DNA of 64,000 bases, from positions 1-64,000 of the forward strand of contig NW_026929500.1 of the NCBI RefSeq assembly GCF_032062105.1, given 5' to 3'. The translations under genes were made by a program, and so were the position numbers. Below the pieces are notes generated by a model. It worked only from the letters and a program-made list of their open reading frames with translations, was not told the DNA's origin and ran no database searches. Shown here piece by piece: positions 29,941 through 30,589 of this stretch. Position 1 is the first letter of the stretch. Every line of letters begins with the position of its first letter. The stretch is from Saccostrea cucullata (taxonomy: Eukaryota).

Positions 29941-30589
29941 CCCTTTGTGGTCCCATTCTCAGATGATCATCATGGATTTGAAAAACAAACCTGAACTATA
30001 ATTACATGTAATAGTTTAAGTTTTCTTTTTTCAACTCTTTTGACCTTGGGAATCCTTTTTCTTTATAAATGTATTTCTACATAAATAATGTATTTCTACA
30101 TTAATTTTGATTGTCCTGCCCGGTCCAATAGGTCATGTTTTAAATAAATGTTTCTACACTTGGTAATAAAGCCTTCCATAATTAAGTTTCAACTCTCCTG
30201 TCACAGTGGTTCTTGGAATTGTTATACATGTATTAATGCAATATGAAAGATCAAGCATTATTACATGGGTTACTTTCACTTTTGCATAGGTTTTACCATA
30301 TCAAGCTAAAAGCAATATCCAATAAACACGTAAAGAGATATGTTTGACATGTTCAATGTTAACCTTAAAAAGATTATAGGCACCATGAGTTAGCCAAGGT
30401 GTCTCTTTCTAACGATGCTCAAGCCTCAAGGAGGTTTCCCTGAAAGATAAAAGCACAGATATTATCATAAACTTCAATGATCAAAAAAGCACTCAAAACA
30501 CTTATGCACACCATATATACACTCTCCTTTAATTCATTCTGCACAATACAACATAAAAGCAAAAATCACACTTCATCTGTGTCCATACA

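Follow-up and report, generated by a model that had tools for sequence, protein, structure and literature searches.

The TARDBP locus and its probable main 3′ end

The window analysed here is a stretch of 64,000 nt of the Saccostrea cucullata genome (contig NW_026929500.1, positions 1 to 64,000), whose minus strand carries TARDBP, the gene of TDP-43. The gene is identified by a Pfam TDP-43_N match (E=2e-34) together with an RRM_1 match, and the translation of its last exon is identical to the S. cucullata protein XP_062619470. Coding exon 1, which encodes the N-terminal domain, occupies 35944–36181 (its 3′ boundary is approximate), and the coding part of the last exon, at 32330–32989, is covered by RNA and encodes RRM2, the conserved helix, the low-complexity tail and the stop codon, which ends at 32330. 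The RRMs and the helix are intact in the encoded orthologue. Intron 3 (32990–33306, minus strand) is of the GC-AG type with the donor AAT/GCAAGT, and its joint 32988/33306 is documented by 59 reads across three runs and by one contig. Ostrea and a Magallana-type contig share the GC donor with the window, and GT stands in its place in C. virginica and other molluscs; RefSeq's X1 isoform (NSNASAAEM) is apparently this joint read as GT-AG with a shift of 4 nt. Two further TARDBP paralogues are present in the genome: one (C10034) has a weaker UG-rich stretch ahead of an AAUAAA at +2267, and the other (C9496) is without a clear block. Upstream of TARDBP, a minus-strand exon at 45203–44895 matches phosphoribosyltransferase at E 2e-05, which does not reach the cut-off of Pfam, and probably belongs to APRT.

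The end of the message was located with RNA from three oligo-dT runs and one contig set mapped on 28990–33489; the unstranded libraries were made from a close relative that differs by about 1.4% in the coding exon and by 6–8% in the UTR, a divergence that reduces sensitivity. RNA cover continues beyond the coding exon, passes the proximal AAUAAA (32006–32011, minus strand), reaches about 30490–30530 and then drops to near zero. The summed depth in the three runs was 24/24/29 in the coding exon, 30/18/33 in the bin 30490–30639 and 0.9/3.1/0 in the bin 30340–30489, and the depth beyond the 30533 site is 0–17% of the depth before it. Because of this collapse the AUUAAA at 30528–30533, which is read on the minus strand as ATTAAA and is invariant in three oyster genera, is most likely the default, main poly(A) signal and the equivalent of human pA1. 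A preliminary description of this DNA had correctly placed the signal, about 1.8 kb past the stop, but had taken it for a distal alternative, whereas by RNA depth it is most likely the default end. Nor do all transcripts end at 32011, the outcome that the same description had named as fatal to its proposal, since the depth carries on across this hexamer, which is not the main end. The region at 30480–30527 (minus strand) contains GU- and U-rich downstream elements with the UGGUGUGCAUAA core of the preliminary description, and cleavage would fall within it at about 30518–30503. Elsewhere in the 3′UTR a 60-nt direct duplication (31573–31454) is missing or replaced in the sequenced relative (joint 31431/31513).

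The UG-rich block and its conservation

Directly ahead of the signal lies a UG-rich and C-poor block (30530–30960, minus strand), a candidate TDP-43 binding region that adjoins the default poly(A) site as defined by the relative's RNA depth. The preliminary description was right about the site itself and left out this array of about 430 nt. On the sense strand the 433 nt of the block contain 70 UG against 18 CA, 8% C and 8 UGAAU words, they are built on a degenerate 22–26-nt tandem array of the UGAAUCAUGAGUGAUCUGGAA type, and they form the top TG-CA window of the whole 64 kb. Since the stretch 30200–30950 is single-copy in the genome, a dispersed-repeat origin was rejected, and a structured RNA was rejected as well, because the block folds no better than shuffles (z=-0.5) and Rfam gave no match at gathering score in 29500–36500. 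Judged by composition, the likely landing zone for TDP-43 would be the whole 300–450-nt block and not the two short cores to which the preliminary description had pointed. The number of array units (30950–30580) is not the same in the sequenced relative as in the window (joints 30808/30771 and 30844/30935), and it also varies among oyster genera.

In BLAST comparison with C. virginica the UTR of the window gave one significant match past the stop region (30880–30484, E 1e-36), the rest of the UTR giving no significant match to this species. The same block is kept in Ostrea edulis, to which identity is highest (88–94%) over 30630–30480, and the 29-nt core of hexamer plus GU element (30533–30505) has one difference from Ostrea and one from C. 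virginica. In three oyster genera the upstream array, the 29-nt core and an acceptor 88–106 nt downstream are all kept, and the conservation on which the preliminary description had made its proposal depend is present; its interpretation is supported by comparison of layouts as far as a conserved TARDBP 3′-end module in the human order of UG-rich region, poly(A) site and downstream acceptor is concerned.

Among bivalves at large the block was followed by a TG-minus-CA measure, which was picked after the block had been seen; with both strands scored, the best 300-nt window falls on the sense strand of the TARDBP 3′UTR in seven of seven orthologous loci. The scores at these loci are 32–43, compared with a mean of 0, an sd of 7.2 and a 99.9th percentile of 29 in 255 kb of oyster genome, and with 22–24 in the two paralogues and 13–18 at three neighbour-gene 3′ ends. 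As a positive control, the 3′ ends of fish contigs with tardbp and tardbpl reach 35 and 33, respectively. The position of the block ranges from +170 to +1800 after the stop, and in five of the seven bivalves (the oysters, scallop and Tegillarca) its 300–450 nt close at a poly(A) hexamer; scallop transcript contigs end 40–45 nt ahead of the block-closing AAUAAA. Beyond the oysters, these comparisons indicate, the sequence is lost and the UG composition is kept.

The preliminary description had also likened the site to human CLIP34nt, whose sequence it quoted as published, and the letters are indeed there: the minus strand reads TTGTGCAGAATG at 30546–30535 and TGGTGTGCATAA at 30513–30502. This likeness is not beyond chance in tests without post hoc cores, in which the human letters were the 34-nt CLIP34nt oligo alone (local score P=0.09 and shared 7-mers P=0.09 for the window). 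In C. virginica and Ostrea the CLIP34nt score is at chance level (P 0.88 and 0.95, respectively), and a fish tardbp UTR gave P=0.12. Both hand-picked cores occurred in order in 0 of 3000 shuffles, the cores having been chosen afterwards. The GUGCAGA ahead of the hexamer is kept in Ostrea and Tegillarca and lost in C. virginica, neither C. virginica nor Ostrea retains the CAUAA tail, and UGGUGUGCA, which is conserved, falls at a place where a GU-rich cleavage element would be expected in any case. Homology to CLIP34nt was rejected as not significant, and a core 9-mer common to fish and other animals was rejected as lying within shuffle range.

The distal acceptor and its candidate partners

At 30440–30465 (minus strand), 94 nt after the start of the hexamer, lies a strong and apparently silent 3′ splice site, which was read as in the preliminary description: TTTTATCTTTCAG/G, the AG ending at 30440 and the exon starting at 30439. 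By a matrix built on 25 TARDBP introns its score is 10.6 bits, which places it in the top 0.1% of background AGs, and only about 1% of background hexamers have an equally good acceptor within 36–206 nt; it is therefore more than would be expected by chance. Matching acceptors are found in Ostrea (10.2 bits), in C. virginica (13.6 bits), where CAG/G and the pyrimidine tract persist despite an insertion of about 15 nt, and, as two sites (11.1 and 11.9 bits), in Tegillarca; scallop and mussels have no strong acceptor within 200 nt. Of the two RNA features for which the preliminary description had called, the end of RNA cover at about 30490–30530 is seen, and a junction into 30439 is absent among the joints listed (the best 15 of 51, in RNA of the close relative), where intron 3 is the only splice joint of the region. 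By RNA depth, any use of 30439 is minor at most. Unmatched 31-nt ends of two Tegillarca contigs (L009 and L010) lie at the poly(A) signal and were interpreted as tips of the assembly and rejected as junctions.

A local hairpin over or abutting the acceptor can be drawn in three oysters (window 30460–30412, minus strand; L035 13434–13482; L002 9111–9161) and might help to silence it. With z of about -2.2 to -2.6, windows picked by eye, pairings that differ and no two-sided pair changes, these hairpins were set aside as a weak lead.

The best upstream partner is a candidate internal donor, AAG/GTAAAC (32656–32664, minus strand, GT at 32661), located between RRM2 and the conserved helix and recognised from sequence. 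Its conservation is partial: the GT of the window is also present in Ostrea and in a Magallana-type contig, C. virginica has GC instead, and scallop and mussel are without the donor; none of the strong donors is conserved across the compared bivalves. The putative distal exon start (30380–30439, minus strand) is moderately conserved and has almost no RNA cover, and a conserved coding exon was rejected there, because the frame is broken by a 2-nt insertion in C. virginica and by an early stop in the window. No short-isoform TDP-43 protein of oysters is on record. A 120-residue oyster-type last-exon protein (P0005) was rejected as a distal-exon isoform, as it looks like an internal deletion: the central part of the tail, flanked by two similar G-rich stretches, is missing through deletion or assembly slip. 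Closer to the stop there is a second, candidate acceptor-like element, an 18-mer at 32263–32280 (minus strand; 51–63 nt past the stop, its AG ending at 32267, 63 nt past the stop), which is found in four of four oysters with 10–12.8 bits. Weaker counterparts occur in scallop and Tegillarca; the element could take an intron removing the low-complexity tail, which by RNA depth is not a major event.

Interpretation and relation to known TDP-43 systems

Taken together, the locus is with somewhat better than even probability an autoregulatory 3′ end of TDP-43 that is kept by composition and layout and not by CLIP34nt sequence. By default the RNA would be cut and polyadenylated just past the AUUAAA at 30533, giving a 3′UTR of about 1.83 kb, as the RNA depth of the close relative supports. 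The unstructured UG-rich block of about 430 nt would serve as a multivalent landing zone for TDP-43, as its composition and position and the conserved RRMs and helix suggest, and at high level the protein may coat the block and hinder cleavage, as in the human system. Read-through would then expose the acceptor at 30439, to which an upstream donor, with 32661 as the candidate, could be joined; such splicing would take out the poly(A) signal and perhaps the low-complexity tail as well, and the spliced message may be degraded, retained or translated into a short protein.

The autoregulatory reading is supported because the UG block tops all seven bivalve loci, above the paralogues and the neighbour ends, because array, core and acceptor outlast the rest of the UTR in oysters, and because two strong acceptors follow the hexamer in the independent lineage of Tegillarca. 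It is likewise favoured by the RNA, which ends at the 30533 hexamer and not at 32011, by the scallop transcripts ending near the block-closing AAUAAA, by annotated short isoforms of Haliotis and Aplysia that use a donor in the last exon, and by the match of order and motifs to human (PMC4937342, PMC3950720, PMC8445024). It is weakened by the lack of a listed joint into 30439, of a conserved strong donor and of an oyster short isoform, by scallop and mussels being without a close acceptor, by gastropod acceptors lying 3.4–18 kb past the stop, by the post hoc TG-CA measure, and by the fly, in which overexpression of TBPH leaves endogenous TBPH unlowered (PMC3605831).

The same features might be those of a main poly(A) site that is ordinary and well conserved, the UG block serving general 3′-end factors or CELF/ELAV-type proteins and the acceptor being a U-rich element that ends in CAG by chance. 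GU- and U-rich tracts commonly follow poly(A) signals, the 150 nt surrounding the hexamer are those best conserved against Ostrea, splicing into the acceptor is absent among the joints listed, and two of four bivalve lineages are without this acceptor; however, the block reaches at least the 99.9th percentile of 255 kb and exceeds the neighbour 3′ ends and the paralogues, CAG/G and its pyrimidine tract survive the insertion in C. virginica, and the order matches that of the human autoregulatory region; this explanation is considered unlikely. A feedback in which TDP-43 binds the block and restrains its own mRNA solely by acting on poly(A) choice, pausing or stability, the 30439 acceptor being uninvolved, would account for a block present in seven of seven bivalve orthologues with a close acceptor in only two lineages, and it agrees with the observation that binding close to a poly(A) site reduces the use of this site (PMC13343711). 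Against it stand the strength of the acceptor, its retention in three oyster genera and Tegillarca, and the human reporters, which lose autoregulation when the splice sites are mutated (PMC3950720), and it is judged quite improbable. True sequence homology of the site to human CLIP34nt, with the short motif as the switch, is very doubtful: the ordered cores, chosen post hoc, and the GUGCAGA ahead of the hexamer in Ostrea and Tegillarca would favour it, but the fair tests described above do not, and in human the whole region of about 600 nt is required and not CLIP34nt alone (PMC3643599).

On the autoregulatory reading, the closest known system is the human TARDBP 3′UTR with TDPBR, pA1 and intron 7 (PMC3950720, PMC4937342), where a UG-rich region of several hundred nucleotides in the own 3′UTR is likewise followed by the main poly(A) site and by an acceptor, a putative one in the oyster, present only in read-through RNA; both proteins also share the two RRMs and the conserved helix. 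The oyster block differs in being a degenerate tandem array without significant CLIP34nt homology; by its layout the oyster 3′ end may work like the human module and is a putative member of its class. Long unstructured regions of more than 100 nt with dispersed UG motifs, including UGAAUG-type words, mediate human TDP-43 autoregulation through multivalent binding (PMC8445024) and resemble the oyster block, with the difference that they were defined by iCLIP in human cells and the block by composition alone.

TDP-43 autoregulation, which is central to ALS/FTD biology, is described in mammals; for fly TBPH one study reported its absence (PMC3605831), and literature searches found no report of it in molluscs. 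The oyster TARDBP 3′ end is a clear and testable invertebrate candidate for this well-known loop and not a new kind of system. It is a tentative idea, held at distinctly less than even probability, that feedback through the own poly(A) site and a silent downstream acceptor is older than the mollusc–vertebrate split and has been kept as UG content and order, oysters having formed their landing zone anew out of a tandem array, the varying copy number of which could set the TDP-43 level. Were the same layout used in bivalves with unrelated sequence, the loop would date to early bilaterians, and these animals would be natural variants showing which of UG density, length, poly(A) distance and acceptor matter, as well as a supply of alternative sensor elements for reporter tests. 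Drosophila TBPH, also an invertebrate TDP-43 orthologue, differs in its reported regulation as noted above, and unlike the oyster most arthropod-type TARDBP UTR contigs are without the block (TG-CA 8–29), with two exceptions (45 and 50). Most copepod-type TARDBP contigs are without a UG block, and three non-mollusc contigs (L093, L055 and L050) have strong sense-strand 3′UTR blocks scoring 50, 45 and 34, respectively.

Short TDP-43 isoforms are annotated in RefSeq for three species of Haliotis, for Patella and for Aplysia. In the mapped annotation models of Haliotis and Aplysia canonical GT-AG splicing joins a GT donor within the last coding exon to distal AG acceptors. Measured from the full-length stop, these acceptors are 3.4–3.75 kb and about 18 kb downstream, and they lie beyond the UG-rich block, which in gastropods is not directly closed by a hexamer. 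Like vertebrate sTDP43 formed with intron 6 (PMC12987623), the gastropod isoforms exit the last exon after RRM2 but before the helix and finish with a short distal exon, and oysters have a candidate donor in the same interval. The gastropod tails are unrelated to the vertebrate tail, and the oyster distal exon differs from sTDP43 in that its frame is not conserved, the tails in the phase concerned being 3, 15 and 65 residues long. A search for the gastropod tail exon in oysters gave no tblastn match. A Tyr-rich tail with HYS-x-x-Y/HYSRY words is seen in Haliotis, Biomphalaria and Patella (L159 17790–17876; P0397, P0398, P0402, P0406, P0414) and is possibly that of a conserved molluscan short isoform.
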